The translations under genes were made by a program, and so were the position numbers. The notes beneath the pieces were generated by a model. That model did no database searches. It was not told where the DNA came from and saw only the letters and a list, made by a program, of their open reading frames with translations. A DNA stretch of 64,000 nucleotides from IMG/VR virus record IMGVR_UViG_3300007513_000001, positions 124,001 to 188,000 of that record. One strand, given 5' to 3'. Position 1 is the first letter of the stretch; every line of letters begins with the position of its first letter. Shown piece by piece: positions 2 through 64,000 of this stretch.

Positions 2-475
2 AAAGCTCCTGTGAGTAAAGTCAGAGCTGAGAACGCGGCATTCGACGATACCAGGTTTAGTATTGAAGTTTCCGCTGTTCGAGCTTTAAATGAAGACATT
101 GTTCTCATTATGTCTTCATTAGACTTTTTTAATAATGCTATCGGAAGTCCAGAGCTTCAGTTTGCTGTATCTTATCCCGAGTTAGAAAAAATGCGAAGGA
201 TATATTTTAATAGGCTAGATAAAAAAATGAGTTTCAAACAACTGTTTGAATTCTTTAAATGGTTTGATGATTCTCTTTCAATCATGATTGAAAGGCTAGT
301 ACCACGCCACACTAATTTCCTCGGCATTAACTTTGTAATAGAGTCTCATATGCTAGAAAGAAATAAGATGTGCTATGCATCTCAAGCTGCCGTATATCTC
401 GGAGAAGAAGATAGAAGACAGCTACAGACTGATTTGCTGCTTAGACAAATTGTGATAAACTTGAGGAAGATGTAA
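2..475 (+). CDS. C-terminal end of a large structural (probably baseplate) protein, truncated by the window start
   Basis: The frame is open from base 2 (aaa gct cct gtg...), so the GTG at 11 is probably not the real start. The stop overlaps the next start (TAATG at 473-477). Structural role inferred from context. Confidence 0.55.
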   Translation, partial: KAPVSKVRAENAAFDDTRFSIEVSAVRALNEDIVLIMSSLDFFNNAIGSPELQFAVSYPELEKMRRIYFNRLDKKMSFKQLFEFFKWFDDSLSIMIERLVPRHTNFLGINFVIESHMLERNKMCYASQAAVYLGEEDRRQLQTDLLLRQIVINLRKM

Positions 476-3081
476 TGGCTAGTACTGTATATCCGCCACT
501 AACAGCGTCTTACCCATTCGTCCAAGGATTAAATGTAAAGACTTTTAACATTTTCTCTCAACGACTCATCGGGACCGTGGGTAGAAACTCTAGATCTAAA
601 ATAGTGTCTCTCAAGACAGTGGTTTCAAGTTCTACTAGAGGCCATAATTTACCCGCTGGAGGCTCTGGTTACAAGATAATAAACCAATCTATGCCTGGGT
701 ATTTCGATGATTCTCTCTATTCGCAACAGGGAGTTACTGTAGAAAAAGGCTCGGGCCCAGCAACTAATTCTTATGTCACGATCGAAGTATTAACCGCTTC
801 ATGGACGCAGACCGGCTCTCCATTTATTGAAATTCAGGTTTGGGATAATTCAAATCTTTCTTCTGGTGGAGCAGAAGAAATGACTCACGGAACTGGATCT
901 GGTGGAACAGAAATCGATGGAGTACAAAGATGGACTAATGACTCTAGTGCATATACAGTTAATGACGGCATGTTTGGGGTGTATGGAAGCGAAACTGGGA
1001 CGGACGCGGGGTTCGGTGATGCACATAGGTACACCATAGGAACACCGGTATTTTGCATAACTGGAAGTGATGGAACAACAGTTACAGGCTCACAACATGT
1101 GGCGCAAGATTTATGGACTGTGCTGTCGGGAGCCGTGTATTATGGCAGGGATGGCTATGGTATACCAGGCTATTCTAGTGGATGGAATAATGGTCCGGTT
1201 TTCGAAATGGCCAGTCGCTGGTCTGGATTACCTTTAAATGTTGAATATGCACCAAACGGCTTAAGAAATGTAGTAAGAGTATCCGCAGCATCAGGCAGCA
1301 TTACAATTGGCATTACTTCTTCTTTTCCAGAAGATGCAATAAGAGTAACTTCTGTACCTGCTGGCACGGCCGAAGCATCATTTGCCTCCGAAGTAGGGAT
1401 CGCTTCCTTTTCAGAAACTGAAGGCTCTCTAACCTTTTTGCCACAGTATAATTTAGAAATTGCAAATTTTGGGTACGATCAACCAGAAACTTATGAACCA
1501 TTCGTAGAAAAAGTTTCTCTCCTCGGCCGTGGTTTGTCGGACGGAGGAGGCTTATTTACGAGTGTGGGATCTGGATCTGAAAAGGGCGCTGTTTCTGTAA
1601 GAGCTTCTCAAATGTTCGCTAAAAAATCGGACAATTATTCTGCTGGGGTAGCTAGCTCTAAACATCCCTTTGCCGAGAAGGAAGCTTTCCTGAGGACGAA
1701 ATTTAATAAAGCAGTAAATGTAGAGCATCCTGGAAAACTTTATCTTGTCAGTCAATTTATTTCTGGCGCAGAGTTAAACTATGGCACCGAAGGTTCACCA
1801 TCTTATTTTTATACAGAGGGATTAAAATTCTTTCATTACGATTATGATATAGCTCAAATACCGGGCAGTCGATATGATATAAAAAATAAATTCTATTGGA
1901 ATGGAATAATAGAGCCTTTGGACATAAGAAAAGAAATAACGGGCCTGCATACTTTTGTTGGCGATTTCTATGATCCAATTTCAAACACTCTTAAAGGGTC
2001 AGTAAGCTCTACAGAAAGACAGCTTACTCATTTAGGTTTGACAGTTCCAATAAGCGAAAATTATGATATAGTAAACGATATAAAAATTACTCCTTTTGAA
2101 TTTATAGACAAGGGGGCAAACATATACGGTCTTTCGTTCCCGGTAGAAAAATATGTTGAGTCTATTCCTAAGCAGTACAGGATGACGATAACTAACACGT
2201 TTAGGGATCCCGACACTGGCGATATGTTGACTTACGATCCAATTCTCGAAGAAGTCTCGGCTATTCATCTAGAACGAATAAGCGGTGCTGGCGGAAGTTA
2301 CTCATTTAGCCTGATGGGCAGTATAACACCGCATATAGACGCCACCACAGACCCAGACTATTCGCTGGGCCAATTTAGTATTCGACCGAAAGCAAAAATT
2401 GATATCGCTCGCGAAATTACTTTTGCTATTAATTCGGGAACTATGGGATCGTATCTTTCTGCTTCTTGTGCCGAAAATCCACCAACAGTAATTATAAATG
2501 CAATTTCTGGGTCTGTATCTTCAGGCACATCTACCCCTGTTTCTTGGCCGAGTAGTTTCACCCTTAGAGACTTTAATGAAGTCGTCCAAGGATTCGATCA
2601 ATGGTCTTGGTCTAGCATACCATGTCGAGAATCTACAGGCGGATCTTATAATGACTACTCTATTTACCTTAATTTGTTAGACTTGTCTGAAAATCCAGAC
2701 CCATTTATAGAAATTGAAACAAATGTTGAAAATTACGAAACGCTTCTTAGAACTAGTGATAGAGAACTTCAAGTGATATTAGCAGTATCTAGTTCCGTTG
2801 CGACGATCCGCACCGATAAATATGCCGGGGCTATTCCAGATGAAGCTGGCGTAGCGCGCGCTTCAGATGGTGCTATCATCAGGTTTGGTTCTACAGGGCA
2901 TCCTGGGACCCCAGCCGTCTGGGATCAGCGAGGGTACAATCAAAGAATACAACGGTTCACGTCCAATCGTCGACCGATGGACCCATTTTCTGACACAGAG
3001 AGATCTACACCAAGAGGCATAGTTTATGAAAACACTCCATTTGGATATGATTCTATAGCTTATGGAGGTTATAAAAAATGA
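475..3081 (+). CDS. Hypothetical virion structural protein (868 aa, Ser/Thr/Gly-rich)
   Basis: Long ORF translationally coupled at both ends; many [ST][GA]S motifs; lies in the structural cluster. Confidence 0.6.
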   Translation: MASTVYPPLTASYPFVQGLNVKTFNIFSQRLIGTVGRNSRSKIVSLKTVVSSSTRGHNLPAGGSGYKIINQSMPGYFDDSLYSQQGVTVEKGSGPATNSYVTIEVLTASWTQTGSPFIEIQVWDNSNLSSGGAEEMTHGTGSGGTEIDGVQRWTNDSSAYTVNDGMFGVYGSETGTDAGFGDAHRYTIGTPVFCITGSDGTTVTGSQHVAQDLWTVLSGAVYYGRDGYGIPGYSSGWNNGPVFEMASRWSGLPLNVEYAPNGLRNVVRVSAASGSITIGITSSFPEDAIRVTSVPAGTAEASFASEVGIASFSETEGSLTFLPQYNLEIANFGYDQPETYEPFVEKVSLLGRGLSDGGGLFTSVGSGSEKGAVSVRASQMFAKKSDNYSAGVASSKHPFAEKEAFLRTKFNKAVNVEHPGKLYLVSQFISGAELNYGTEGSPSYFYTEGLKFFHYDYDIAQIPGSRYDIKNKFYWNGIIEPLDIRKEITGLHTFVGDFYDPISNTLKGSVSSTERQLTHLGLTVPISENYDIVNDIKITPFEFIDKGANIYGLSFPVEKYVESIPKQYRMTITNTFRDPDTGDMLTYDPILEEVSAIHLERISGAGGSYSFSLMGSITPHIDATTDPDYSLGQFSIRPKAKIDIAREITFAINSGTMGSYLSASCAENPPTVIINAISGSVSSGTSTPVSWPSSFTLRDFNEVVQGFDQWSWSSIPCRESTGGSYNDYSIYLNLLDLSENPDPFIEIETNVENYETLLRTSDRELQVILAVSSSVATIRTDKYAGAIPDEAGVARASDGAIIRFGSTGHPGTPAVWDQRGYNQRIQRFTSNRRPMDPFSDTERSTPRGIVYENTPFGYDSIAYGGYKK

Positions 3082-6000
3082 AAAGGGATTTTAGAAGATC
3101 AGAAATTCCTGATCTTAATCAAAATTTTCGAAATTATCGTAGCGGTGCATCTCTTTTAGCGCATTATGTTTTTGGTCAATATGATTCTAATACTGGAACT
3201 ATTGAAAATATAGCTAAGGGCAGCAGCTATGCTGCGTTGACTTATGAATCGTCAGTTGATCCTATTACTGAGTCAGTGTATGGATCGCCCTACGTAGGAA
3301 AAACTGATCTAAGATCATTTTCTTTTAAAAAACTTAGAAAACAAAGTGTTAGATTAGTTTATTCAGCGACTGGACTAAGTTCTAACCAAGCGCCTGTTAC
3401 TATAGCTGGCTGGGCCAGAATGCCATCTTTAGACGGAGACGGTGATGCCACGCTCAGCATATTTACGAGTGTTACGGCTGGATCTACTTATAGTGAAAAC
3501 GTTACAGGAGCTTTAAAGTTTACTTATAGACCATCAATAAGCAAATTTTCTTTTTCTATATCTGGTGTCGATTCAAACGGCTCAACAACTACGCTGGTTT
3601 TACCAACTAGAGTAATTCAAAGTTTTAAAAATTCTAAAGCTATAATGGGCGGTAAATGGTTTCATTTTGCAGTAAACATTTCAAATAGTTTAACTAATGG
3701 TGTTAGCGCAGACGATTTTATTTCTTCTCACACCAGTATTTACATTAACGGAGAGAAAGTCGCTGACGGCTCCAACGCAACAGGCGGTGACGGCACATCT
3801 GGAAATAAACTTGCTGGTAATTTTACTATAGCTAATTTATCTACAGATTTAATATTTGCCAAAGGGCCAAGCGACACTGGATTATTAGCTAATTTTTCTA
3901 CTTTAGAAATTCATGAAACAGCTATCTGGTCGAAAGTTCTTGGAGCTGTTGAAATAAAGTCTCTCTATGAAGCTGCTATAATGTTTGTTGGGAGCGGTGT
4001 AGTAAGTTTGCCGCCAAGAGTGCAAATTCAAAACGTTTCCAACAATGCTATTGTTAACCCATTAAATATTTCAGTGGCACAAGACATCCGCTTGTTAAAT
4101 ACTAGCTCATTTTTTGATGACACTATATCTAGAGAGTTTGGTAGCGAAATATTCATAAACTATTCTGCCAAAGTTCCCGTCACAAGTTTTTCTCACATAT
4201 ATTCAGGTGTGGCAGAAAATGTTATATTAAATCATCTAATAACTGCTTCAGTGGCCTCTCCTTCACTTCCACCAGACATTTATGTTTCTGCTTCTTTGGG
4301 ATCTGCGTTCTCTGCTTCGCACAATGTTTCGACTGGCTCCGGTATTTGGAGTGATGAAACTATTAACAGGGCAGATTTTACAGCAATTAATTATGGAGAT
4401 AATTCCGATCGGCGATATTCGTATCTTAACAATTCTAGGCCGAGTGGCTTTATATTTCCATCTTACGGAAGAGGGTATAGTTGGAATACTTCTAAAACCC
4501 CAGCTCCGTATGAGCCGTTTGTAGATTCTGCAGTAACGTTTGATAAGTGGAACCAGGTTTGGACGAAAGATTCTAAAATAGGGTTAACTTTTAGTGCTAG
4601 TCTTGATGCGCCAAGAACAGATCGAAGAATCGTATCTATTCCGTTTACGAACCTCAGCACGAAAAATCTTAGAAGATACGATGCTGGCGCAGAAGATCAG
4701 GACTACGACGGTTTCAAAGGCGCGGGCAACTCTGCAACAGCATCGACTACGGGATTTTGTTTTTTCGACTGGAAGCAGGGCCGGTGGGCAGACAAAGGAG
4801 ACGGCCTTGCAGACGGAACTAATGGTATATACCATTTTAGGTTAATAGCTGAAAGATTCTATCGGTGGAATTGGCTTACGCAATCAGTAGACCCAGGTGA
4901 TCTTTCATCACCATCCTACCCAAGTAACAACTCGACGTTCTACCTATCTGAGTCATACATAGACGGCCGAGGTTCTGGCGGACCAACTATGCCAATCTAC
5001 AAAAGGGATCCTGTCCCCGGCCAAGTCTGGAGAAAATGTTCGCCGCCAATAGCTGGTTTTGATAGTATACCAAGACAATTTTTCCCTGGTTTCAAAGATG
5101 TAGATAGCTTGTTTAGCAGCCGCTCTTATGCAGAAAGCATCAAAATGCCGGCTTTCTTAACATCGAATAAATATGCTGGACACCCTATGGTTCAATACGG
5201 TGCACCGCAAGACACGAGATATTATGCTCCTGATACGCAAGTTATAGATACTTCTAATTACTTAGCGGCTCCATTCATGCTTGAAAAAATAATATTAGAG
5301 CTTCCCGTTGAAGGGATACGAACCTACTCTAATAAAGATAGATATCCAGGAAATGCATATCCGCAAGATGATTATGTGTTTTTCTTATATAGACAAGAAA
5401 GAAATAATCCTGTGTCTTCTAAGGAAACTTCAACCGCAATCCAGGGAGTGCTCTCTGCGAGCAATAGATATTTAATATGCAGCGGAAACGTTGCTGTTTA
5501 CGCCAACGATTGCTGGGATTCGGATTCGAGATCTGTAAATCCATACGGTGGCGCCCCAGTCGGTCTTCGAGGTAAATCTTACACAGACCATTTTTATGAC
5601 ACAGAAACAGGCGCAACCAATCAATTTTCTCCAGTAAATAGCCCAGATCAGGCTTTACCATTATTAAAATGGAAACTTACTGGGGACCCATTTAACACTG
5701 TTCAAGATATAAAATGGAGCGATAAATATCTTTATTATGGATATCCATCCGCTTTCGCTGGTAGCACCCCGGCAAAAGAAGTAACTACGGGCGAAACTAA
5801 TGTAGTTATTTCAATGACGCCGGCAGTTGCGCCAAAGAGAAGATATGGTAGATTTTGGGAACACACTCAAGTTTTAAAAGTTTATTCTGGAAATTATGAA
5901 CAATTGTCTAAATATGGAAGGCTGTACTACCCGGGAGGAGGGGGAACTTACCGTATCCCAGTGAATAATCAAACAGCTATCAGAGACTCCGAAGGCTTAA

Positions 6001-8678
6001 ATATTAACAAATCTTTTCTTTTTGCTTCTTCGGCGATAAGTGCTCGAAACCCCAACGCTAATATAATGACGATGCCTACCGATATATCGTCTTCTTTAAA
6101 TTATAATTGGTGCGCTCCTGTATGGTCAGTCCCTGGCGGTGCGACATACCCTCAGGGCACTCTTGGACCACAGCCCGTAAATGATAGTGGCGCCCCATCC
6201 GGATATAATGTTAGCGCAAATGGTAATTTTCAATTTAAACATTTTGATATTACTAAAGATCCCACTTTTGCACCAAAATCAGATCCAACTAGCAAGAAGT
6301 GGGTAACCGTTATTCCAGGTGAAGTCCCGCCTGATTTCAATAGGGGAATGCCTGTTTTCTGCACTTGGCTAGGTGGAACGTCTACAGTAGGATTCCACCA
6401 GATCAACGAGGGGATAAGAGAACCATCGTTAGTTAAAACTTACCTGACTAAAAAATCTGCAGCCTCAGCAACTCCTTGGTATGGACAGCGTTTTCCATAT
6501 TCAAAACCACCTGTTACTCTTACACCGCTCGGCGTGATAACAGCTTCAAACGAAACATATTTTAATTATTCTAATGAGCCATTTTCTGCAGTTCCCAATA
6601 GGCACCCTAATGCGTTTTTTGAAATAAATCAATTAAACGAAGTTAATACTAAAAGATATTTTTCTGCCGAAGTTAACGATCCAAGAACCGTTAATCACTC
6701 TTTTTCTCATAGATACACACCATATAGAGAAACGGTTTCATCTTCTTTCTTTTCTGGATCTATCGGAGTCGACGATTTTTATGCAACAGCTAGAGATTTT
6801 GATATTGTTTGGAATAGTACGAGATTAAAATTTGATCCACCGCCTGCAGCTTCATCTACAGAAACTGGATATCTACTTTTTCCAGGAGACGAATTAATAC
6901 TTGGCGTCGAAGCAGCGATCGCTGCTCCTTCGTATTATTGCTCTGGAAGTATAACTTGCATAACAGGGTCTTATCTAAAGTTACTGCCCGGGGATTGCAA
7001 GATTACACTGGTCGGATCTTATGTTAAAGACAAAAAGAGAGTTTTAAATAATTCAGCTCAACAGCTATTAAATGCTAATGCTTCATTTGCGATCGGAATG
7101 GATATTGTCACCGATCAGTTTGAAATAGAGTCTAGAGATTCATATACTGGAAATTTCTTATCTCAAGAAATGTCAGGTGCCGTCGTTACACCGGTGGCCA
7201 AGTCCCCGATACAACCATCGACTATTGCAGTTCATCTCCCGCCATATGGCGCTTACCTGAACGGCAGAACTGTTTTAGAATGGCCAGGAATGGAAAATTT
7301 CCGAAACTACAGAAAAGTAGTTTCGGAGACACTCTATGAAAATATGGGAGATACATATGCATTCAATCGATTTGTTAAACTTTCTCAAAGCGGCTCTCTG
7401 TTTTATGATAGTTTAGTCCCCAATGTTCAAGATTTATGGGCGTCTTATACGCCATTCCAAATAGGGTATAATCCCAGTACGGTAACGCCCGTTCTTGGAA
7501 TGACGTTATCTCCAGGTCCAGATGGAATAATTGATACGCGTCATAAACTTTCTGCATTTGGAACTATTTCTAGAGCTTGGCTCCAAGCTCTTTGGCCAGG
7601 AGCTAAAGGAAGCGCTGATGTAATGAATCCAAGACAGTCTGAAATATTTTTAGAAGCTTATAACGAAAACTGGAATAATTCTTTTCCCTATGAGCCAAAA
7701 TATACCAGAAAGATGAAAACTGCAGATGGTGAAGTATTGACTATTCTGCCAACAAGAAATTCAGAGCAGAAGTTTGTAGGCGTGGCAAATGCTCATGACG
7801 GAAATGGCCCATCGCTCAGCCTTCAGCGGGGTATGGTTGGAATAGTTACCCCTCTTAAGATGACGAATGTAAATAATCTGCTTCCAGATCCTGCTAGCCC
7901 GAGAGCTGGAGTAGATCAAGTTAACTTTTTAGATTCTCCCGGTTTAATAATGTGTTCTCCTAAAAAGAAGTCTAAAGGCTCAGTTCCTTATGTTGCAGGC
8001 ACAACCGCAGCCGGCTCCCCCCCAGACATAAATGCCTTTAGGAATGCTTATTTGGCACCAAACCATAAATTTTGGTATCGCTCAGATGACTCTAAGATGC
8101 TTTTGAAATATCTTTACGGAATAGAAACTGGAAATGATTTCTTCGCAACAAGAACTTATACTTCTGGAGCAGCGCTACAGGATTCTAGAGAGTATATGAT
8201 GGGAGCTAGCACCGGTATAATACGTTGCCCTTATGCTCCATCACCGAGAACTTATCCATACTATCATCAAAAATTTATGACTACTAAACCCAGAGGCTGG
8301 AAATATGGAGTGATGAATGCACTTCCAATCGCGCCTTCCGCTATTTTCCGTGGTAATAGGTTCGGGCAGTTTAGAGATATGTTAGAACAGAGAAGAGATT
8401 CGGTGGTTTTCAATGTTGGAGGAGAAAGTGTGGACTTTTCCACACTTCCAGTTGTTGTTACTTTTAAAGAGCCATCTTGGAAGACGAATTTAACTGATCC
8501 TGGAGGCGAAGTATCTGTTTCTCCAGAAGAAACACACAGCTCCAATCTAAGCTTGTACGCCACTAGTTCTGTTCCATATTTTGACGATCCAAAACAAGCT
8601 CAATATCCTACTGGCCGAAATAGATCTTCTGTATGTGATTTTAGAGATTATGTTGAAGTTACAACTGACACGGAATAA
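3078..8678 (+). CDS. Large structural protein (1866 aa) with N-terminal LamG/ConA-like beta-sandwich; putative baseplate or receptor-binding protein
   Basis: LamG-like signatures TIAGWARM...GKWFHFAVNI...TSIYINGEKV...EIHETAIWSKVLGAVEIKSLY. Confidence 0.65.
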   Translation: MKRDFRRSEIPDLNQNFRNYRSGASLLAHYVFGQYDSNTGTIENIAKGSSYAALTYESSVDPITESVYGSPYVGKTDLRSFSFKKLRKQSVRLVYSATGLSSNQAPVTIAGWARMPSLDGDGDATLSIFTSVTAGSTYSENVTGALKFTYRPSISKFSFSISGVDSNGSTTTLVLPTRVIQSFKNSKAIMGGKWFHFAVNISNSLTNGVSADDFISSHTSIYINGEKVADGSNATGGDGTSGNKLAGNFTIANLSTDLIFAKGPSDTGLLANFSTLEIHETAIWSKVLGAVEIKSLYEAAIMFVGSGVVSLPPRVQIQNVSNNAIVNPLNISVAQDIRLLNTSSFFDDTISREFGSEIFINYSAKVPVTSFSHIYSGVAENVILNHLITASVASPSLPPDIYVSASLGSAFSASHNVSTGSGIWSDETINRADFTAINYGDNSDRRYSYLNNSRPSGFIFPSYGRGYSWNTSKTPAPYEPFVDSAVTFDKWNQVWTKDSKIGLTFSASLDAPRTDRRIVSIPFTNLSTKNLRRYDAGAEDQDYDGFKGAGNSATASTTGFCFFDWKQGRWADKGDGLADGTNGIYHFRLIAERFYRWNWLTQSVDPGDLSSPSYPSNNSTFYLSESYIDGRGSGGPTMPIYKRDPVPGQVWRKCSPPIAGFDSIPRQFFPGFKDVDSLFSSRSYAESIKMPAFLTSNKYAGHPMVQYGAPQDTRYYAPDTQVIDTSNYLAAPFMLEKIILELPVEGIRTYSNKDRYPGNAYPQDDYVFFLYRQERNNPVSSKETSTAIQGVLSASNRYLICSGNVAVYANDCWDSDSRSVNPYGGAPVGLRGKSYTDHFYDTETGATNQFSPVNSPDQALPLLKWKLTGDPFNTVQDIKWSDKYLYYGYPSAFAGSTPAKEVTTGETNVVISMTPAVAPKRRYGRFWEHTQVLKVYSGNYEQLSKYGRLYYPGGGGTYRIPVNNQTAIRDSEGLNINKSFLFASSAISARNPNANIMTMPTDISSSLNYNWCAPVWSVPGGATYPQGTLGPQPVNDSGAPSGYNVSANGNFQFKHFDITKDPTFAPKSDPTSKKWVTVIPGEVPPDFNRGMPVFCTWLGGTSTVGFHQINEGIREPSLVKTYLTKKSAASATPWYGQRFPYSKPPVTLTPLGVITASNETYFNYSNEPFSAVPNRHPNAFFEINQLNEVNTKRYFSAEVNDPRTVNHSFSHRYTPYRETVSSSFFSGSIGVDDFYATARDFDIVWNSTRLKFDPPPAASSTETGYLLFPGDELILGVEAAIAAPSYYCSGSITCITGSYLKLLPGDCKITLVGSYVKDKKRVLNNSAQQLLNANASFAIGMDIVTDQFEIESRDSYTGNFLSQEMSGAVVTPVAKSPIQPSTIAVHLPPYGAYLNGRTVLEWPGMENFRNYRKVVSETLYENMGDTYAFNRFVKLSQSGSLFYDSLVPNVQDLWASYTPFQIGYNPSTVTPVLGMTLSPGPDGIIDTRHKLSAFGTISRAWLQALWPGAKGSADVMNPRQSEIFLEAYNENWNNSFPYEPKYTRKMKTADGEVLTILPTRNSEQKFVGVANAHDGNGPSLSLQRGMVGIVTPLKMTNVNNLLPDPASPRAGVDQVNFLDSPGLIMCSPKKKSKGSVPYVAGTTAAGSPPDINAFRNAYLAPNHKFWYRSDDSKMLLKYLYGIETGNDFFATRTYTSGAALQDSREYMMGASTGIIRCPYAPSPRTYPYYHQKFMTTKPRGWKYGVMNALPIAPSAIFRGNRFGQFRDMLEQRRDSVVFNVGGESVDFSTLPVVVTFKEPSWKTNLTDPGGEVSVSPEETHSSNLSLYATSSVPYFDDPKQAQYPTGRNRSSVCDFRDYVEVTTDTE

Positions 8679-42586: not shown

Positions 42587-42597
42587 AGGATTACAAA

Positions 42598-42969
42598 ATG
42601 CTTTCAATTCAACAAACCAATGTACTCGGACAGATTTTAGAAACTTCTTGGGGTAAGAGTAGCCAAACTTATAGCTGTAAAGCTAATTTAGTTGGAGAAA
42701 ATACTCTTAGAGTAATGTTTAGCACGATAGTGTATTTAGCATCAGAGCGAGGAATGGAAGTTCAAATTCCAAGAGTTGCCGAAGAAGCAAATGAACGAAT
42801 CGCGGGACTCATATCAAACTGTAAACAACAGTATAAAGATATTTCAGGCGAAGCTTTAGGACTAAAAGAAGAATCTCAAAGAGACAGTGTAGAGCTAGTT
42901 CAAGCATCTTCAGTAAATCCCCGTCGAGTAGCGCTCTATAGAAAATTTGTAGATTTTTCCATAAGCTAA
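42598..42969 (+). CDS. Hypothetical protein (123 aa)
   Basis: GAGG SD; fills the gap before terL. Confidence 0.6.
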   Translation: MLSIQQTNVLGQILETSWGKSSQTYSCKANLVGENTLRVMFSTIVYLASERGMEVQIPRVAEEANERIAGLISNCKQQYKDISGEALGLKEESQRDSVELVQASSVNPRRVALYRKFVDFSIS

Positions 42970-42985
42970 CTAACGATGGGTAGAG

Positions 42986-44581: not shown

Positions 44582-44598
44582 TTTATTCTAGAATAAAA

Positions 44599-44610
44599 AT
44601 GAATATTTAT
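44599..44610 (+). promoter_or_regulatory. Putative late promoter ATGAATATTTAT
   Basis: Identical 12-mer at 59834; lies upstream of the portal gene. Confidence 0.6.
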
Positions 44611-44635
44611 TGTAAGAACAAGAGTGATATAGAAA

Positions 44636-48088: not shown

Positions 48089-48544
48089 ATGTCAAATTAT
48101 AGAACTGGCCCCGGTTGGAACTTTGCGCCGGAATACCAGTGTTCTGGCACGCCTTTTGTAACATCAAGCAATTATGATGAAATCAGCAGTAGTGGTGTGG
48201 TAAGTGTTAAGTTTCCAACTGTTACAAGATGGGTCCAAATTAGAAATATCGGCGCTAAAGAATTAAGAGTTGGTTTTACCGAAAATGGAGTTGATGGAAG
48301 AGGCGGGTCTGTTTCAGGCTCAGCCGTTGAAGCACAGGGTAATAGCCGCAATTATTATATAATACCAACCGGCTCACTTGACGGAACTTCCACTGTTTTG
48401 TGGGAGCTTCGTTGCGATAAATTGTTTTTTACATCGGGTGAATCTGGCGGAACTGGATTTTCATTGGTAGCTGGGCTTACTAATATTAGACCTTCAGAAT
48501 TCTTTAAACTCACAGGATCCCTTGGTTTCCGAGGAGTTGGATAA
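48089..48544 (+). CDS. Hypothetical beta-rich protein, possible capsid decoration protein
   Basis: 151 aa, beta-strand pattern, three [ST]GS motifs, located in the head module. Confidence 0.5.
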   Translation: MSNYRTGPGWNFAPEYQCSGTPFVTSSNYDEISSSGVVSVKFPTVTRWVQIRNIGAKELRVGFTENGVDGRGGSVSGSAVEAQGNSRNYYIIPTGSLDGTSTVLWELRCDKLFFTSGESGGTGFSLVAGLTNIRPSEFFKLTGSLGFRGVG

Positions 48545-54260: not shown

Positions 54261-56150
54261 ATGTCAAAAAAATTTACACTGAATCAGTTAACTGAAGGTA
54301 TTCGCCAACGCAACGTTGGAACGGGTAACAGAAGGTTAATTGAAAAGTGGTCCCGCACTGGTCTCCTTAGGGGATTGGAAGGTACCACTCGCGAAAATAT
54401 GGCGACCTTACTTGAAAACCAAGCATCGCAAGTACTTCGTGAAGCCAACTCAATTTCCACCGGTGGTGGAAACTTAACTTCGTCTGGAGATCTTCGTGGT
54501 TTTCAGAATATCGCATTTCCAATTGTTCGCAGAGTTTTCGGCGGACTAGTTGCTAATGAATTAGTGTCAGTTCAGCCAATGAGCCTTCCGTCTGGATTGC
54601 TTTTTTATCTAGACTACACATATGGAACCTCTGTAGGTGGCCAGTCTGATGGTGATTCTGCTACGTACCCTTCAGGAAGCTCTATTTATAATGCTCCTAC
54701 GGGTAAAGGCGTACGTTCTGGTTCTCTTGGAATCGGTGGCCAGTACAATCTTGCTGGCTCTGGTTATTCAAGAGTCCACCAGTTAGCTAACACTATTACT
54801 CTACTTGCTTCTGGAGCATACCAGGGAACTACTACGTTCTCGGGCGGTGGCACTAGCTATAAACGCATGACCGCTACCGGTTCTGATGGTAAGCTTCTCC
54901 AGTTTGACGAACAGATTTGTAGGCTGATCGAAGATCATCCAAACAGCGAAGGCTTAGGCGTTTTCACTGCTGTTTTTGTAGACCTGAACTCTACTCAGTT
55001 TAGTAATGGTGATCTTTCAATGGTTAAGGATTTCGCTCTTATACCATCGGCATCCGCTATTAACTTTGCAGGTCCCTCGCAGACTCTTAAAGATCAAGAC
55101 GTTCAAATTTCAGGAAACAAGGTTATTAACGTTAGACGACTTAACCAGATTGGTAAATGGGATGGAACTTCATTCACTCACGATCCGTTAACTAAGGCGG
55201 GTGATTCAAACGCTGCAATATTGATGATTATCTCAGGTACAGATTCTTTCTCTGAGGGAATGGATATTGATTATATTTTATCACCAAGCTTAAATGTCGG
55301 CAGTGATGGAGACGCGCTAACGATTCCAACCTTTGAGTCTAACTTCGGTACTACACCTTCACCAGAGATTCCAGAGATTGATATTAAAGTTGAATCTATT
55401 GCGGTTACTGCAGTTACTAGAAAGCTCCGCGCTCGCTGGTCACCAGAGCTTGCTCAAGATCTTAACGCGTATCACTCTTTAGACGCAGAAGTTGAGCTTA
55501 CTCAGATCCTTTCTGAACAAATTGCTCTTGAGTTGGATCGTGAAATTCTTAATGATCTACTCACTCAGGCTAAGACGAACTTCTACTGGTCGCGCTCACC
55601 AGGTAAGTTCATGAACAAGCGGAGTGGCGCTCTAGTTACTCCAGGCGGAGCAGGGAACATTGGTCCAAGCTTCACCGGTACAGTTCGTGAATGGTATGAG
55701 ACTCTAGTTGAGACCATTATTGATGTTGCTAATGAGATTCATAGGCTTACATTACGCGGATCAGCTAACTTCATCGTAGTTTCTCCAGATATTGCAACTA
55801 TCCTCGAAGCTTCAGTTCTGTATAGACCTACTTATAGCTTGGACGGAGACGGCCAAGTCGGAACTCCAATGAGTATTGGAGCCGAACAGGTTGGAACCCT
55901 TAGTAACCGTTTCACGGTATACAAAGATCCTTACTTCCCAAGAAATAAGGTTCTCGTAGGATTCAAGGGCGGAAGCTATCTTGAGACCGGTTATGTATAC
56001 GCACCTTATGTGCCTCTAATCGTTACTCCAACAATCTTCGCTCCAGAGGACTTCACGCCGCGTAAGGGCGTTATGACTCGCTATGGCAAGAAGATGGTTA
56101 GAAGCGATTTTTATGGTACTGTTACGGTTGCAGATCTTAACGTAATCTGA
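54261..56150 (+). CDS. Major capsid protein, copy 2 (T4 gp23-like HK97 fold)
   Basis: First 123 aa identical to copy 1; last 264 aa differ at 6 positions; central ~245 aa insertion is divergent. Confidence 0.95.
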   Translation: MSKKFTLNQLTEGIRQRNVGTGNRRLIEKWSRTGLLRGLEGTTRENMATLLENQASQVLREANSISTGGGNLTSSGDLRGFQNIAFPIVRRVFGGLVANELVSVQPMSLPSGLLFYLDYTYGTSVGGQSDGDSATYPSGSSIYNAPTGKGVRSGSLGIGGQYNLAGSGYSRVHQLANTITLLASGAYQGTTTFSGGGTSYKRMTATGSDGKLLQFDEQICRLIEDHPNSEGLGVFTAVFVDLNSTQFSNGDLSMVKDFALIPSASAINFAGPSQTLKDQDVQISGNKVINVRRLNQIGKWDGTSFTHDPLTKAGDSNAAILMIISGTDSFSEGMDIDYILSPSLNVGSDGDALTIPTFESNFGTTPSPEIPEIDIKVESIAVTAVTRKLRARWSPELAQDLNAYHSLDAEVELTQILSEQIALELDREILNDLLTQAKTNFYWSRSPGKFMNKRSGALVTPGGAGNIGPSFTGTVREWYETLVETIIDVANEIHRLTLRGSANFIVVSPDIATILEASVLYRPTYSLDGDGQVGTPMSIGAEQVGTLSNRFTVYKDPYFPRNKVLVGFKGGSYLETGYVYAPYVPLIVTPTIFAPEDFTPRKGVMTRYGKKMVRSDFYGTVTVADLNVI

Positions 56151-59879: not shown

Positions 59880-62800
59880 ATGGCTGAACAGACCTTCCGT
59901 TCTCCAGGGTTTTTTGAACAAGAGATAGATCTTTCACAGAGAGAGAAAGCTCCTGTAGGTACTCCTGCGGGTATTATTGGAACCTCACAAAAGGGTCCAG
60001 CTTTCGTACCTGTGATTGTCGGTTCTTTTGCAGATTTCGAAACGCGATTTGGTACATTAGATTCAAACCGTTTTGGTCCCTATGCAGTTAGAGAATACTT
60101 AAAAAACAAAGATGCAATAACTTATCTAAGAGTACTTGGTGCAGGATCTAACGACACCAGTTCTGAAATAAGCAACACACAAAATTATGGAATCGTTTCC
60201 AAAGCTGGATTCGTTGTTTCCGGGTCTCGGGTAGTTGGCTCTACCGGAGCGGGCAGTGGAGATCAGCGACATCGCGGATGCGTGCAGTTCTTATGCGCTC
60301 GCCACTACCTTTCAGCTTCTGAAGGCTCAGTTGGATATCCAATTTTCGACGATAACGATTCCTTTCCGGGGCTGTCTTCTGTTAGTACCCGTGGAACTAT
60401 CAACGTTATCAACTTAGTTCGTGGAATGATAATTCCAGCATCAGGAACTAGAGTTATGTTAGCTAATTGGGATGAATCTATTGGGGGGTCTTCATATTCG
60501 CCTCCAACTGAAGATATTGCTACTAGAAACGATAATCCAACCGCTGAAGCTTATAATACTTTTAAAATTATTATTTCTTCTTCGGCAGGTACAGGTTTTG
60601 CAAATGATGATGCTGTAGCTGGCTTTAGAATTTATTCAGCCTCTTTAGATCCGAATAATGACAATTATATTTCTAAAGTCTTAAATACAGATCCGTGGAA
60701 GTTTGGAGAAGAGCAACATATCTTATGGGCTGATTTCCCTGTAGAAAATGAATTGGCTCCAGTATCCGAGGGCGCAGGCGCCATTGGGATTCTTTCCGGT
60801 ACAAACGCTACAAATGGGATTGGATTAAGCGAGAATTGGAGAGATTCTTTCGGTAGATTTGATACTAGATACACGGCACCACGAACACCATCTCTTATAT
60901 CACAGCCTTTCGGTGGCACAGAATATGATCTGTTCCACTTTGAGTCTCTTTCTGATGGTTCCTATGCAAACTCGAAGCATAAGGTCTCTATTGCCAATCT
61001 CCGGGCTTCTACAGACGAAAATTACCCATATGGTACTTTCGAAGTTCAGCTAAGAAAATTTGATGATAACGACCTTTCAAAAGAAGTGATTGAGGTTTAT
61101 CCAGAGTGTACTCTTGATCCTAAGAGTGATAGATTTATTGGACTTCAGATTGGTGATAAAAAAGTATTTTATGATTTTGACTCTGAAGATCCAGAAGAGC
61201 GTAGACTAGTAGTCGAAGGGAAATATCCTAATCGCTCTCCAAATATTAGAGTGGTAGTTAATAACGCTGTATATAACGGAGAAGTTCCGAAAGCTTCCTT
61301 GCCTTTCGGTTTCCGCGGTATTCCAGTACTTAAAACCACTGATACATTTACTGATATTCCAAGCAGTACAATTACTGGCTGGGAAGGAGGCTGGGGTTCG
61401 ACCGGCACAAGGGTTTGCGGAGTTTTGAACCGGGACACAGCTTCTGGACTTTCTGGTTCTATTTTACCTCCACTACCATATAGATTTAAGTGCACAAGAG
61501 GTCAAGTGGATTCATCTCCGGCATTTGCTGGTGATCCAGGCAAAAACGAGAGAGCAGATTCAAGACTTTATTGGGGAACAATGCCCACGCGTTTACCTCT
61601 CACAGCTTCAGTAACTCACGCTACTTATGATGCTAATATCGGAAGCTTAACCAACAACTTGGTTAAGGGATATACAACATTCCAGGGGATTGTGAAACTA
61701 GACAACTTAGTTACTGGCTCTGGTGCAGATGCGTTTAATAATAACAAGTTTACTCTTGCTAGAGTAGCTCTTTATAACACTGAGACAAACTTGAGCAAAA
61801 TTACTGGCTCTGCCAATGAGCACATGCTCGATGCTGCGTATATTAGAAACGGAATTTATAGTTCTACTGATTATACACTTAGTGATGGCGTCAGGTCTGG
61901 AAGACTTACTTTGGCGACTTTAATAAATTCTAGTTCTATTAAGTTTAACCGGTTCCAAGATTACGCGAAGTTTACTCTTCCGTTCTATGGCGGTTTTGAT
62001 GGACTAAACGTTTTAAATAAAGCTAACGCGCTTATGAATGATAGAGCAGCCTCTACAGATCCAAAAGGTCTTGCTGGGGATGATCCACCGGGCGGTGGAC
62101 TCGGTCTTGGCGGAACAGCTGGAAACGGATCAATGTCTGGGCTGGGACGCCAAAACAACGTAGTTTTCTCTTACAGAAAAGCTGTAGAGATTATGACTGA
62201 TCCAATGATAGTCAACACTAATCTTCTTGCGGTACCAGGCATAAGAGATCCATTCATTACTGATCTTGCTGCTGATAGAACTAGAGATTATTCAATGGCT
62301 ATGTATGTTATGGACATTCAGCAGTACGACGAAGATGAAAATAGACTGTTTGATTCTGACACTGCGAAGCGAGATGTAAGAGAAACTGCCGAGCAGTTTG
62401 AAGGCCGTAGAGTTAATAACAACTATGCTGCGACTTACTTCCCCGACGTATATATCGATGACCCAGTTAATAATAAGAGTGTTTTAGTTCCTTCATCTGT
62501 AGTTGCTATGGGGGCTTTGGGTTATAACGACACTGTAGCATATCCTTGGTTCGCGCCTGCTGGATTTAACCGCGGATCATTAGACAACGTTAGAAATACT
62601 GCGGTGAGATTAACTGCTGGAGATAGAGATGAGCTATATGATGCTAGAGTTAATCCTATAGCTAATTTTCCAAATGGCGGATTCGTCATCTTCGGCCAAA
62701 AGACCCTGCAGATCAACAAGAGTGCGCTTGACAGGGTAAACGTTCGAAGAATGTTACTTGAAGTCAAGAGATTAGTGGTTCAAGTAGCAGATAGACTGTT

Positions 62801-63044
62801 ATTCGAACCAAACACACCGGCAACAAGATCGAGATTTATTTCTCAAGTTGCACCAATTTTAGCACTAGTTCAATCACAGGCAGGTATAGAGAAGTTTTCT
62901 GTGGTCATGGACGACACAAACAATTCGCCACAAGATGTAGAGCAAAATAAACTGAATGGTAGAATAGTGGTTGTTCCCACTCGTTCTGTTGAATTCATTG
63001 CTATTGACTTTATTATCACAAATAGTGGCGTATTGTTCATGTAA
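59880..63044 (+). CDS. Contractile tail sheath protein, copy 1 (1054 aa)
   Basis: SPGFFEQEIDLS, KGPAFVP, PWFAPAGFNRG, VNPIANFP, IFGQKTLQ, ALDRVNVRRML and LFEPN. Confidence 0.95.
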   Translation: MAEQTFRSPGFFEQEIDLSQREKAPVGTPAGIIGTSQKGPAFVPVIVGSFADFETRFGTLDSNRFGPYAVREYLKNKDAITYLRVLGAGSNDTSSEISNTQNYGIVSKAGFVVSGSRVVGSTGAGSGDQRHRGCVQFLCARHYLSASEGSVGYPIFDDNDSFPGLSSVSTRGTINVINLVRGMIIPASGTRVMLANWDESIGGSSYSPPTEDIATRNDNPTAEAYNTFKIIISSSAGTGFANDDAVAGFRIYSASLDPNNDNYISKVLNTDPWKFGEEQHILWADFPVENELAPVSEGAGAIGILSGTNATNGIGLSENWRDSFGRFDTRYTAPRTPSLISQPFGGTEYDLFHFESLSDGSYANSKHKVSIANLRASTDENYPYGTFEVQLRKFDDNDLSKEVIEVYPECTLDPKSDRFIGLQIGDKKVFYDFDSEDPEERRLVVEGKYPNRSPNIRVVVNNAVYNGEVPKASLPFGFRGIPVLKTTDTFTDIPSSTITGWEGGWGSTGTRVCGVLNRDTASGLSGSILPPLPYRFKCTRGQVDSSPAFAGDPGKNERADSRLYWGTMPTRLPLTASVTHATYDANIGSLTNNLVKGYTTFQGIVKLDNLVTGSGADAFNNNKFTLARVALYNTETNLSKITGSANEHMLDAAYIRNGIYSSTDYTLSDGVRSGRLTLATLINSSSIKFNRFQDYAKFTLPFYGGFDGLNVLNKANALMNDRAASTDPKGLAGDDPPGGGLGLGGTAGNGSMSGLGRQNNVVFSYRKAVEIMTDPMIVNTNLLAVPGIRDPFITDLAADRTRDYSMAMYVMDIQQYDEDENRLFDSDTAKRDVRETAEQFEGRRVNNNYAATYFPDVYIDDPVNNKSVLVPSSVVAMGALGYNDTVAYPWFAPAGFNRGSLDNVRNTAVRLTAGDRDELYDARVNPIANFPNGGFVIFGQKTLQINKSALDRVNVRRMLLEVKRLVVQVADRLLFEPNTPATRSRFISQVAPILALVQSQAGIEKFSVVMDDTNNSPQDVEQNKLNGRIVVVPTRSVEFIAIDFIITNSGVLFM

Positions 63045-63055: not shown

Positions 63056-63085
63056 TTGTAAGAGAAATTTTAGGAGCACAAATAA

Positions 63086-64000
63086 ATGGCTGAATTAACT
63101 TTTAAAAGTCCGGGAGTTGCAACAAGGGAGATTGACCTTTCAGGTCCGACTAGTGTTGCCCCTCAAGGTACCCCAGCTGGAATAATCGCTACGGCAAATC
63201 AAGGTCGAGCTTTTGTTCCAGTGACAGTTGCTACTTACCAAGATTTCATCGCAACATTCGGAGCTTCCGATGGCGAGAAATTTGGACCGTTAGCTATGAA
63301 CGAATGGATGAGAAATGCAAAGGCGGGTACTTATCTAAGAGTTCTCGGCGTTGGCGATGGAAAAAAGAGAATTACATCGCAAACAACAGATGCTGGTGGT
63401 TACGACATTTATCCTGGAGCAGTAAAAAATGCAGGATTTATTGTAGGGACCAAACAATTAAACGATAAAGGATACCTCAACACTAACGTTTATGCTTACG
63501 ACTATGGTGTAGCTGGCGGAACATATATGTTTGGCGCACTAATGTCTGAATCTGCAGGAAGTACAATATTTTCCGATGCGGGTTTGCAGAGCAAAAATTA
63601 TTCGTGGATTGGATATGGCGCAAAAGCAGTTCCAATTTTAAGAGCTGTTTTAATGGTTGCATCTGGTGTTACTTTAGGACTTTCTGGCAACTTAGTTAAA
63701 GGGCCGGGCGCTGGAGTTGTAACAGCTTCTGCCACAGGAACAAAGGGAATATTAAGCTCTGCGTTTGACGGCGGTGCAAGTTGGGGAGAGCTAGATCTTA
63801 CCTCGGCAAACCACTACAACTTTACAATGCTGTTAAACGGGCACAAGAACACCTCGGCTTATCCAAATACAATTACAGCTTCTATGTCTCCTTGGAGCCC
63901 TTCATATTTTACAAATGTATTCAACACAGATCCAACTAAACTACAGCAAGCTGGATATTATATGTACACGCATTATGATATTGCTCCAACTCTTGCGGTT
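63086..64000 (+). CDS. Contractile tail sheath protein, copy 2 (partial, runs off the window; absent from the ORF track)
   Basis: AGGAG SD then ATG 63086. Hand translation gives MAELTFKSPGVATREIDLSGPTSVAPQGTPAGIIATANQGRAFVPV...FGP...TYLRVLGVG...VFNTDP, colinear with sheath 1. Confidence 0.9.
   Translation, partial: MAELTFKSPGVATREIDLSGPTSVAPQGTPAGIIATANQGRAFVPVTVATYQDFIATFGASDGEKFGPLAMNEWMRNAKAGTYLRVLGVGDGKKRITSQTTDAGGYDIYPGAVKNAGFIVGTKQLNDKGYLNTNVYAYDYGVAGGTYMFGALMSESAGSTIFSDAGLQSKNYSWIGYGAKAVPILRAVLMVASGVTLGLSGNLVKGPGAGVVTASATGTKGILSSAFDGGASWGELDLTSANHYNFTMLLNGHKNTSAYPNTITASMSPWSPSYFTNVFNTDPTKLQQAGYYMYTHYDIAPTLAV

Follow-up and report, generated by a model that had tools for sequence, protein, structure and literature searches.

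The window analysed here, a 64,000-nucleotide stretch (positions 124,001 to 188,000 of IMG/VR record IMGVR_UViG_3300007513_000001), carries structural-module genes of a 293-kb T4-like ("Far-T4") phage. It encodes baseplate-region and fibre proteins, a protein with a LamG/pentraxin-like lectin jelly roll, head proteins, two copies of the major capsid protein and a tail sheath, together with an SbcC-like protein, terminase and portal (Table 1). Many of the outer particle proteins share the short tripeptide [ST]-[GA]-S, which the sequence-only reading had proposed as a virion-wide sequon for glycosylation or another modification. Additionally, a glycan-synthesis island of roughly 31 kb ends about 10.7 kb upstream of window base 1.

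Table 1. Features of the window and of the surrounding genome with their motif content (window positions unless marked genome; observed against expected counts are for [ST]GS unless stated otherwise)
Position	Strand	Feature	Motif content	Observations
475..3081	+	868-aa protein of the baseplate region	7 [ST]GS (10 [ST][GA]S)	7 against 2.6 expected, p 0.005; no family match, no Pfam or PHROG hit
3078..8678	+	1866-aa structural-module protein	5 [ST]GS (12 [ST][GA]S)	Weak excess only: 5 against 3.1, p 0.19; by global shuffle 12 against 5.6
8759..15808	+	2349-aa fibre protein of repeated modules that each carry several motifs	32 [ST]GS	Modules such as F-SGS-LTxLxDG and L-TGS-QFSGNxGV-TGS-IGS; after masking, 60% is redundant with paralogues and the remaining 950 aa give 5 against 3.6
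15809..17908	+	699-aa fibre paralogue	15 [ST]GS	97% aligns to other fibre ORFs
18318..20390	+	690-aa fibre paralogue	5 [ST]GS	
21044..22000	+	318-aa protein	3 [ST]GS	3 against 0.6, p 0.01
25337..31138	+	1933-aa structural-module protein	0 [ST]GS	0 against 3.5 expected; no family hit
33724..35109	+	461-aa protein of unknown fold	7 [ST]GS (7 [ST][GA]S)	Sites at 33820-33828, 34450-34458, 34762-34770 and 34813-34821 nearly invariant among homologues of about 50% identity; family average 4.0 against 0.9 expected in 78 homologues; AF2 model pLDDT 63.5, no PDB fold match
35123..37657	+	844-aa protein with LamG/pentraxin-like lectin jelly roll	7 [ST]GS plus 4 [ST]AS	Conserved sites at 35216-35224, 35912-35920, 36143-36151 and 37211-37219; family average 6.8 against 1.4 expected in 75 homologues
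39199..46636	+	SbcC-like protein (1043 aa), terminase (531 aa) and portal (666 aa), negative controls	1 [ST]GS together ([ST][GA]S: 2, 0 and 1)	Homologues in 51-62 relatives at 0.5x of expectation
48089..48544	+	151-aa head-region protein	3 [ST]GS (3 [ST][GA]S)	3 against 0.7, p 0.02
52269..54167	+	Major capsid protein copy 1 (gp23 family)	3 [ST]GS, in the insertion region	3 against 1.3, p 0.14, not significant alone; sites not conserved in other Far-T4 capsid proteins
54261..56150	+	Major capsid protein copy 2		88% identical to copy 1
59880..63044	+	Tail sheath copy 1 (1054 aa)	8 [ST][GA]S (4 [ST]GS)	All 8 at residues 114-642, outside the conserved C-terminal core; 4 against 1.7, p 0.1
genome 82,049-113,345		Glycan-synthesis island		At least 8 glycosyltransferases
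genome 110,935-113,345		Tandem GT4a/GT4b pair		Predicted heterodimer
genome 225,460		Thymidylate-synthase-family gene		

The observation made from the sequence alone is confirmed, and it proved sharper than first stated. The hand counts of [ST][GA]S were reproduced exactly, with 3 and 4 copies in the two capsid proteins, whereas the fibre-region proteins hold 45, 17, 12 and 10. In an unbiased scan of all 8000 tripeptides of the proteome, SGS (104 against 51.5 expected) and TGS (77 against 35.9) rank 3rd and 4th, while permutations of the same residues (GSS, SSG, TSG, GTS) are near expectation. With shuffling inside 10-residue blocks, the count is 181 against 98 (z 8.5). After masking of every BLAST-detectable repeat or paralogue it is 124 against 78 (z about 5), and block sizes of 6 to 10 residues keep z at 4.8-5.2. 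When the non-redundant set is split by class, virion proteins hold 88 [ST]GS against 42 expected (z 7.7), 46 [ST]AS against 30 (z 2.9) and 134 [ST][GA]S against 71 (z 8.4), whereas non-virion proteins hold 64 [ST][GA]S against 71. Thus, the enrichment survives control for local Ser/Thr/Gly content and for repeats, which had been set beforehand as a test of the idea.

All three positions of the motif are specific. In xGS only S (2.7x) and T (2.5x) stand out, in SGx only S does, and in SxS it is G (2.7x) followed by A (1.6x). In virion proteins SGT, SGN, SGD, NGS and DGS sit at 0.7-1.5x, the same level as SGT/SGN/SGS in six unrelated phages pooled (1.3-1.5x). Hydrophobic residues are enriched at -3 to -1 and I/L at +1, with alternating hydrophobicity after the motif, and the codons vary. 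However, three points of the sequence-only reading are weakened. First, the fibre, capsid and sheath proteins are paralogues: the fibre proteins (genome ORFs 77424, 132759, 139809, 142318) share repeated modules and account for a third of all copies, and the near identity of the two capsid proteins means that retention of the motifs in both copies carries no weight. Second, the capsid and sheath counts are not significant on their own, and the capsid sites are not kept in immuto, Mel-JY01 or RM378. Third, 'virion-wide' is an overstatement, as the 1933-aa, 1110-aa, 589-aa and 234-aa proteins of the same module show no excess.

The signal is limited to part of the Far-T4 clade. This phage stands at 1.85x (z 10.3), 80 uncultured relatives at 2.18x, Flavobacterium phage immuto at 2.25x (z 9.5) and Rhodothermus phage RM378 at 2.63x (z 8.2). 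In contrast, T4 is at 0.58x, crAss001 at 0.65x, PTm1 at 0.84x and KVP40 at 1.02x, and the others, including cyanophages, are at most 1.47x; the signal is therefore not generic to beta-rich virions or to Bacteroidota hosts. In 51-78 homologues per family, the families of the 461-aa and 844-aa proteins are at 4.5-4.7x, while the neighbouring terminase, SbcC and other families are at 0.5-0.85x. Conserved sites vary only within the motif (S<->T at the first position, G/A/S at the second, S(T) at the third). Furthermore, lineage-specific insertions of the 844-aa family are still 2.85x enriched (37 against 13 in 19 alignment columns). The same tripeptide appears in unrelated folds and, in the AF2 models, in different settings, including hairpin-like turns, strand ends, loop starts, long loops and helix N-caps. 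It also occurs in immuto tail-spike proteins with no detectable homology to the proteins here.

The search of the remaining genome for glycosyltransferases and sugar-nucleotide genes, also set beforehand as a test of the idea, came out in its favour. Besides its glycosyltransferases, the island encodes PseB/PseC/PseF-like proteins, a NeuB/PseI-family synthase, HldD (281 bits, above the 274.6-bit cut-off), a heptose-7-phosphate kinase and a GT9-like protein, although all Pse-model hits fall below the equivalog cut-offs. The tandem GT4 pair is syntenic in 4 large relatives and in immuto, and both proteins keep the EX7E signature. Their predicted heterodimer scores ipSAE 0.85 against a best control of 0.00, a mark reached by 51 of 78 solved complexes and 2 of 108 mismatched pairs. 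However, no glycosyltransferase follows the motif cleanly across genomes. GT4a homologues also occur in Mel-JY01 (split into two ORFs; motif at 1.22x) and LR756508 (1.18x over 142 kb that include its structural region), which are not enriched. GT4b is absent from RM378 and LR756508, GT9 is absent from immuto and RM378, and no Maf-type flagellin glycosyltransferase is present in the genome.

The interpretation as a modification sequon is only partly supported. The element Phi-[ST]-G(>A)-S-Phi (Phi = hydrophobic residue) is best explained as a short linear motif kept by selection in a subset of exposed particle proteins, namely the fibres and spikes, the baseplate periphery, the LamG protein, the sheath insertion domains and small head proteins, in one branch of the Far-T4 phages. 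Restriction to virion proteins and to one clade, together with occurrence in unrelated folds and lineage-specific insertions, is what a recognition site for a trans-acting factor would look like, and recognition by such a phage factor made during infection is considered the most likely reason. 'Convergent accumulation' of the motif, as first proposed, is only partly right, because several sites are ancient and nearly invariant. The leading, still tentative candidate is O-glycosylation of one of its hydroxyl residues in the cytoplasm, possibly by the GT4a/GT4b pair (GT4a alone in RM378). In this view, sugar donors would come from the adjacent island, with its pseudaminic/neuraminic-type nonulosonate synthesis, ADP-heptose synthesis, dTDP- and UDP-sugar steps, a carbamoyltransferase and a formyltransferase. 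What the analysis establishes is the reality and position-by-position specificity of the motif, its restriction to virion proteins and to this branch, the conservation of some sites with continuing gain of new ones, the existence of the island and the predicted pairing of the GT4 proteins. That any enzyme touches these sites, which residue is the acceptor, and which enzyme and sugar are involved are inferred from sequence alone, without chemical data. Moreover, the island could instead serve modification of the host surface or glycosylation of DNA, since a thymidylate-synthase-family gene is present and phage DNA glycosylation is documented (10.1101/2023.12.21.572611). No candidate late-promoter motif lies inside the island.

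A purely structural reading is possible and almost as well placed. [ST]-G-S would be a favoured tight turn or beta-arc, with Gly in a left-handed conformation, Ser at the second turn position and Ser/Thr closing the preceding strand, used by the beta-rich fibre, spike and jelly-roll modules typical of this branch. Its abundance would then reflect common descent, internal duplication and shuffling of such modules, with no modification involved. The hydrophobic flanks, the nearly invariant Gly with S<->T at the strand end, and regular repeats such as V-TGS-LxV-SGS-LIV in the fibres resemble a beta-strand/tight-turn/beta-strand unit. In the model of the 844-aa protein two sites sit in short strand-turn-strand connections and the others lie at strand ends, and the overall AlphaFold context (strand ends, loop starts, helix N-caps) also fits a structural turn. 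The lack of a co-varying enzyme also fits. However, turn physics is universal, yet the equally beta-rich virion proteins of T4, KVP40, S-PM2, HTVC008M, PTm1, crAss001 and Mel-JY01 are at 0.6-1.4x. Other good turn formers (N, D and T at the third position; N and D at the first) are not enriched, sites also lie ahead of helices and inside long loops, and enrichment persists in non-homologous proteins of immuto and RM378 and in lineage-specific insertions.

Recognition by a different trans-acting factor, such as a Ser/Thr kinase, another modifying enzyme or a clade-specific assembly chaperone binding Phi-[ST]GS-Phi segments of fibre and baseplate proteins, appears unlikely. It shares the general arguments for a trans-acting factor, and the imperfect tracking by glycosyltransferases leaves room for it, but no candidate gene was identified, albeit without a systematic search, and the one large, obviously relevant gene set next to the virion module is for glycan synthesis. 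Finally, although the motif-rich proteins are rich in Ser, Thr and Gly and fibre repeats contribute many copies, an artefact of composition, repeats or a motif chosen after the fact is effectively refuted by the unbiased scan, the masked local shuffles and the independent replication in immuto and RM378.

Several described systems offer points of comparison. The Gly-Ser tight beta-turn (type II'-like hairpin) likewise places Gly followed by a small polar residue between two hydrophobic strands, but a generic turn preference should appear in all beta-rich virions and include N, D and T, which is not observed. In flagellin O-glycosylation with pseudaminic or legionaminic acid by Maf-type transferases, the known sites have hydrophobic residues upstream of Ser/Thr, and a nonulosonate pathway is present here, though without a Maf/MptE-like domain in the genome. 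Autotransporter heptosyltransferases (TibC/Aah; PMC4358343) O-heptosylate Ser in the cytoplasm on loops of a beta-helix substrate using ADP-heptose. This genome encodes HldD, the heptose kinase and the GT9-like protein, yet the latter shows no sequence match to TibC and is absent from the motif-carrying immuto and RM378. Chloroviruses encode their own sugar and glycosyltransferase machinery, and their capsid protein is glycosylated by these virus-encoded cytoplasmic glycosyltransferases at non-canonical sequons. GT4a gives a weak sequence hit to the chlorovirus GT4 protein B736L (PDB 3oy2; E 4.3e-6), no better than hits to other GT4 enzymes, and those are eukaryotic giant viruses with N-linked glycans. 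GtfA/GtfB and SdgA/SdgB, the cytoplasmic O-GlcNAc transferases of serine-rich-repeat and SD-repeat adhesins, are GT4-type enzymes that act on Ser in short S-x-S-like repeats, and GtfA works as a two-subunit complex, which recalls the predicted GT4 heterodimer. However, the hits to the GtfA and SdgA models lie far below the family cut-offs (29.8 against 574.6 bits; 21.2 against 800 bits), those to the Gtf1 structures are also weak, and similarity is only at the generic GT4 level. Both phage proteins keep EX7E, and the acceptor motifs here would be single sites at strand ends rather than long disordered repeats. The precedent among phages is virion O-glycosylation in mycobacteriophages (Freeman et al. 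2023; reference 80 in PMC12582341), where phage-encoded glycosyltransferases likewise lie near the structural genes and exposed particle proteins are the proposed targets. Those phages are actinobacterial siphoviruses whose sites are reported to lie in Ser/Thr-rich C-terminal extensions of the capsid and tail-tube proteins without a defined tripeptide, whereas in the present case, with modification only inferred, the phage is a T4-like myovirus and the motif is a defined Phi-[ST]GS-Phi.

The virus record from which bases 124,001-188,000 were taken is 293,409 bp long, has direct terminal repeats, is estimated to be complete, and has a GC content of 39%. It represents a T4-like myovirus. It encodes a gp23-family capsid protein (Pfam Gp23, E 7.8e-75), sheath domains, a gp6-like baseplate wedge just upstream of the window, and a portal with weak DNA matches to Tevenvirinae. 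Based on a tblastn search with the capsid protein, its nearest named relatives are Microcystis phage Mel-JY01, the uncultured phage LR756508, Flavobacterium phage immuto, and Rhodothermus phage RM378. Moreover, its capsid proteins of 632 and 629 aa are longer than that of T4 (521 aa). These features place it in the 'Far-T4' group of Roux et al. 2015 (PMC4360716).

The sequence-only reading had counted the tripeptide [ST][GA]S by hand in individual proteins, and every one of these counts is reproduced. To find out whether the motif would emerge without prior knowledge, all 8000 tripeptides were scored over 376 crudely called ORFs against per-protein composition. SGS was found 104 times against 51.5 expected and TGS 77 times against 35.9, which are ranks 3 and 4, behind only the start-of-protein MKI and IRE. 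In the whole proteome, SAS and TAS are near expectation, and so are permutations of the same residues such as GSS, SSG, and TSG. Shuffling of residues only inside 10-residue blocks, which controls for local Ser/Thr/Gly richness, still gives 181 observed against 98 expected (z 8.5). An all-against-all BLAST showed that four fibre-like ORFs share repeated modules and that the capsid, sheath, and several small genes are duplicated. After masking the later copy of every aligned residue, 124 remain against 78 (z about 5). When this non-redundant set is split by class, virion proteins hold [ST]GS 88/42 (z 7.7), [ST]AS 46/30 (z 2.9), and [ST][GA]S 134/71 (z 8.4), whereas non-virion proteins hold 64/71 for [ST][GA]S. 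Thus, the observation is confirmed, and in a sharper form than originally stated.

Each position of the motif is specific. Before GS, only S (2.7x) and T (2.5x) are enriched, and after SG or TG only S is strongly enriched, with T, N, and D at 1.1-1.5x. Between S/T and S, the order is G (2.5-2.7x) followed by A (1.6-1.7x). Hydrophobic residues rise from a background of 32% to 40, 47, and 53% at positions -3 to -1 and to 51% at +1, where they are mostly I or L. The codons are diverse, with only a modest TCT preference at the last Ser. A DNA-level cause is therefore rejected, and the signal lies at the protein level, as the sequence-only reading had said.

Most of the excess sits in a few proteins, namely the paralogous fibres, three baseplate-region proteins, and the 461-aa and 844-aa proteins, with small contributions from the 318-aa and 151-aa proteins. 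The capsid proteins (3 against 1.3) and sheath 1 ([ST]GS 4 against 1.7) are not significant alone. Additionally, the two capsid copies are 88% identical and their sites are not kept in other Far-T4 capsid proteins, so that the capsid sites were rejected as uninformative evidence. The two sheath paralogues are diverged (35% identical). All eight [ST][GA]S of sheath 1 lie outside the conserved C-terminal core. Several large proteins of the same module have no excess. The 1933-aa protein holds none against 3.5 expected and has no family match, a PHROG search of the motif-free giant proteins returned no hits, and the neighbouring 1110-, 589-, and 234-aa proteins also show no excess. This may reflect an inner/outer or a substrate/non-substrate division. 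The earlier description of the motif as 'virion-wide' and as present in 'unrelated' proteins is therefore overstated. The coordinates of the features are collected in the following table.

Coordinates of the motif-bearing proteins, the glycan island, and other features
Feature	Record	Position	Details
Glycan-synthesis island	This phage, genome	82,049-113,345	About 31 kb; ends about 10.7 kb upstream of window base 1
Tandem GT4 pair	This phage, genome	110935-113345	416 and 387 aa
Baseplate-region protein	This phage, genome	119,449
Baseplate-region protein (LamG)	This phage, genome	120,984
Baseplate-region protein	This phage, genome and window	genome 124,475 (window 475-3081)
Structural-module protein without [ST]GS	This phage, window	25337-31138	1933 aa
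461-aa and 844-aa proteins with shared C-terminal domain	This phage, window	33724-37657	Domain of about 90 aa
Major capsid gene, tandem duplicate	This phage, window	52269-56150	632 and 629 aa
Tail sheath, two paralogues	This phage, window and genome	window 59880-63044; genome 187086-190235	1054 and 1049 aa
Thymidylate-synthase-family gene	This phage, genome	225460-225969	Pfam E 4e-17, partial coverage
Virion genes preceded by the candidate late-promoter element (examples)	This phage, window and genome	window 8759, 33005, 44636, 48089, 50556, 59880; genome 77424, 117100, 192370	Element about 20-56 nt upstream
Early regions with clustered extended -10 elements	This phage, genome	13-45 kb and 245-284 kb	TGGTATAAT-type
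Shared C-terminal domain	Mel-JY01	173-181 kb	Five proteins
Shared C-terminal domain	immuto	92-93 kb
Shared C-terminal domain	RM378	116 kb
Shared C-terminal domain	LR756508	115-119 kb
GT4a homologue	Mel-JY01	83441-84932	Annotated as two adjacent ORFs
UDP-galactopyranose-mutase-like gene and, a few genes away, the protein with the shared C-terminal domain	RM378	112985-117526

One IMG/VR scan with the 461-aa protein found 280 related loci, of which 80 were fetched at 48-72% identity. Across 51-78 homologues per family, the 461-aa family carries 4.0 [ST]GS against 0.9 expected and the LamG family 6.8 against 1.4, while the flanking terminase, SbcC-like, and four other families are at 0.5-0.85x. 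Several sites are nearly invariant at about 50% identity and vary only within the motif definition, with S<->T at the first position, G or A or S at the second, and S or rarely T at the third. There are also many sporadic sites, with 80 distinct alignment columns in the LamG family. Furthermore, lineage-specific insertions (column occupancy below 30%) are still 2.85x enriched, with 37 against 13 in 19 columns. The pattern is therefore a mix of ancient conserved sites and continuing gain, not pure convergence. The 461-aa and 844-aa proteins share a conserved C-terminal domain (..FNYSxNPT..TTVGLYD..LLAVAKLSxP..K....DF/Y), which recurs at the end of several differently sized proteins in other Far-T4 phages and is probably a common attachment module. 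In Mel-JY01 and LR756508, only this shared domain is detectable, which precludes an orthologue-level comparison of site loss there. A tblastn search with a fibre protein against cultured phages gave no match.

The signal is not generic, as indicated by whole-genome values from the same crude gene calling and 10-residue shuffles.

Whole-genome [ST]GS enrichment in this phage and other phages
Phage	Observed/expected	z
This phage	1.85	10.3
immuto	2.25	9.5
RM378	2.63	8.2
Cellulophaga phi14:2	1.47
S-PM2	1.37
Flavobacterium 11b	1.27
HTVC008M	1.26
Cellulophaga phi38:1	1.23
KVP40	1.02
Tenacibaculum PTm1	0.84
crAss001	0.65
T4	0.58

Regional samples gave 1.22 for Mel-JY01, 1.18 for LR756508, and 1.13 for P-HM1, and the 80 relatives pooled gave 2.18. 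In T4, [ST]GS is under-represented (18 against 31, z -2.5), and in crAss001 it is low (11 against 17). The two cultured phages immuto, whose host is Flavobacterium sp. LMO8, and RM378, whose host is Rhodothermus marinus, show the same sharp signature (SGS 2.7x, TGS 2.2-2.9x) with the same hydrophobic flanks, in proteins with no detectable homology to the motif-rich proteins of this phage. For instance, in immuto these include the 1053-aa 'tail spike' gp101 with 26 copies and the 373-aa protein gp056 with 12. A host-phylum effect (Bacteroidota) is rejected, because crAss001, PTm1, phage 11b, and phi38:1 are not enriched. The effect follows part of one phage clade, and it follows neither host phylum nor beta-richness.

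The sequence-only reading had noted that no modifying enzyme lies in the window. Immediately upstream of the virion module, however, the genome holds a glycan-synthesis island with at least 8 glycosyltransferases, comprising three GT2 and four GT4 proteins and a GT9-like protein. Additionally, it contains PseB-, PseC-, and PseF-like proteins, a NeuB/PseI-family nonulosonate synthase, ADP-glyceromanno-heptose 6-epimerase (HldD), a heptose-7-phosphate kinase domain, an RmlB-like dehydratase, an FdtA-like isomerase, a UDP-glucose dehydrogenase, a formyltransferase, a carbamoyltransferase, and a methyltransferase. A fibre-like 1463-aa ORF with 16 motifs lies directly upstream of the island. The last two genes before the baseplate genes are a tandem GT4 pair, which is syntenic in four large relatives and in immuto, where it lies at 49.2-51.7 kb of the record, and both proteins keep the EX7E signature. 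They are predicted to bind each other, with an ipSAE of 0.85 against a best control of 0.00, a mark reached by 51 of 78 solved complexes and 2 of 108 mismatched pairs; this supports binding but does not show it. In RM378, a UDP-galactopyranose-mutase-like gene sits among genes that are probably structural, so that a sugar-nucleotide gene is found in such a setting in a second motif-enriched phage.

The promoter sequences were also examined for the timing of island expression. The T4 late consensus TATAAATA is under-represented (8 per strand against about 24 expected) and was therefore not usable for this purpose. A candidate late-promoter element, GAATATTTA or ATATTTA[CT], precedes many virion genes, and lies 30-50 nt upstream of several of them and of the 1463-aa fibre-like gene, but it lies upstream of none of the island genes. 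No terminator-like site was found between that fibre-like gene and the island. The TGGTATAAT-type extended -10 elements cluster in the early regions.

The glycosyltransferases track the motif only loosely across genomes. In the cultured-phage collection, GT4a homologues occur only in the Far-T4 genomes immuto, RM378, Mel-JY01, and LR756508, and they are absent from ten other phages tested. GT4a is thus present in every enriched genome, but also in Mel-JY01 and LR756508, which are not enriched. In Mel-JY01, the tblastn match comes in two pieces, which could represent a split or broken gene or a sequencing error. GT4b is missing from RM378 and LR756508, and GT9 is missing from immuto and RM378.

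The LamG protein was modelled well by AF2 (pLDDT 79.5), and its central domain matches pentraxin/LamG lectin folds. Of its seven [ST]GS sites, two lie in short strand-turn-strand connections, one at the start of a strand, one immediately before a strand, two just ahead of helices in lower-confidence regions, and one inside a long loop. In the model of the 461-aa protein, which is of medium quality (pLDDT 63.5) and has no PDB fold match, the sites sit at strand-to-helix, helix-to-helix, and helix-to-strand junctions. Judged from the secondary structure of the models alone, there is no single stereotyped element, but all sites are at the edges of secondary-structure elements, at strand ends, at loop starts, and just before helices.

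The sequence-only reading took the motif for the recognition site of an enzyme that modifies the particle, and this interpretation is partly supported. The analysis itself establishes the enrichment, its position specificity, its restriction to virion proteins and to part of one clade, and the existence of the island. In contrast, a covalent glycan on the Ser or Thr of the motif and any action of the GT4 pair on it are inferred, and the pairing of the two GT4 proteins is a prediction only. A trans-acting factor that recognises the tripeptide best explains four things together, namely the restriction to virion proteins, the restriction to part of one clade, the occurrence in unrelated folds and insertions, and the specificity for Ser over the other turn-forming residues. 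Given the island and the conserved, probably heterodimeric GT4 pair, O-glycosylation is the leading version, although it is held only tentatively. However, the island could also serve modification of the host surface or of DNA. The divergent thymidylate-synthase-family gene could be a ThyA or a pyrimidine hydroxymethylase, which bears on whether some island glycosyltransferases act on DNA, and phage DNA glycosylation by glycosyltransferases is documented (10.1101/2023.12.21.572611).

The closest competitor, possible and only slightly less favoured, is a purely structural Gly-Ser turn inherited and multiplied with the beta-rich modules of the clade. It explains the hydrophobic flanks, the invariant Gly, and the lack of a co-varying enzyme. 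Recognition by another factor, such as a kinase or a chaperone, is considered unlikely. An artefact of composition or repeats is excluded by the local shuffles, by the masking of repeats and paralogues, and by replication in other genomes.

Particle glycosylation changes how phages are recognised by hosts, grazers, immune systems, and particle surfaces. Here, a simple sequence statistic flags a candidate site code in a large, environmentally abundant, and mostly uncultured group. A more far-reaching possibility, which is considered less likely than not, is that a branch of the Far-T4 phages coats the exposed parts of its particle with glycans by means of a phage-encoded, two-subunit GT4 O-glycosyltransferase that reads a defined sequon, Phi-[ST]-G-S-Phi. 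In this view, sugar donors, possibly including a nonulosonic acid or a heptose, would come from the phage glycan island. If the motif proves to be purely structural, it would still be a distinctive, clade-specific building rule for fibres and spikes, useful for annotating exposed virion proteins.

Among phages, particle glycosylation is documented only for some actinobacteriophages, and no sequon has been defined. The proposed system would thus differ in having a defined sequon, the first described for phage virion glycosylation, and would be the first such system in T4-like phages of aquatic bacteria. For a generic Gly-Ser beta-turn, comparable enrichment was not found in other beta-rich phage virion proteomes, as the nine other phages are at 0.58-1.47x and their pooled SGS is 1.3x. 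Compared with Maf-type nonulosonate flagellin glycosylation, no Maf/MptE-like transferase domain (PF01973) was matched in the phage's own genome at E<=0.1. With respect to autotransporter heptosyltransferases (BAHT), an ADP-heptose supply pathway is present, as HldD scores 281 bits against a 274.6-bit cut-off and the heptose-7-phosphate kinase domain is hit at E 1.6e-36, below its cut-off. However, a phmmer search against PDB found no TibC chain at E<=1, and a BAHT-like heptosyltransferase is rejected as the common enzyme, since GT9 is absent from two enriched phages. The similarities of the GT4 proteins to the GtfA, SdgA, and chlorovirus B736L proteins are at the generic GT4 level, and the score to the GtfA family model (TIGR02918) is 29.8 bits against a 574.6-bit cut-off. 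Nevertheless, like the two-subunit O-GlcNAc transferase GtfA/GtfB, the phage encodes two adjacent GT-B proteins that are predicted to form a complex.
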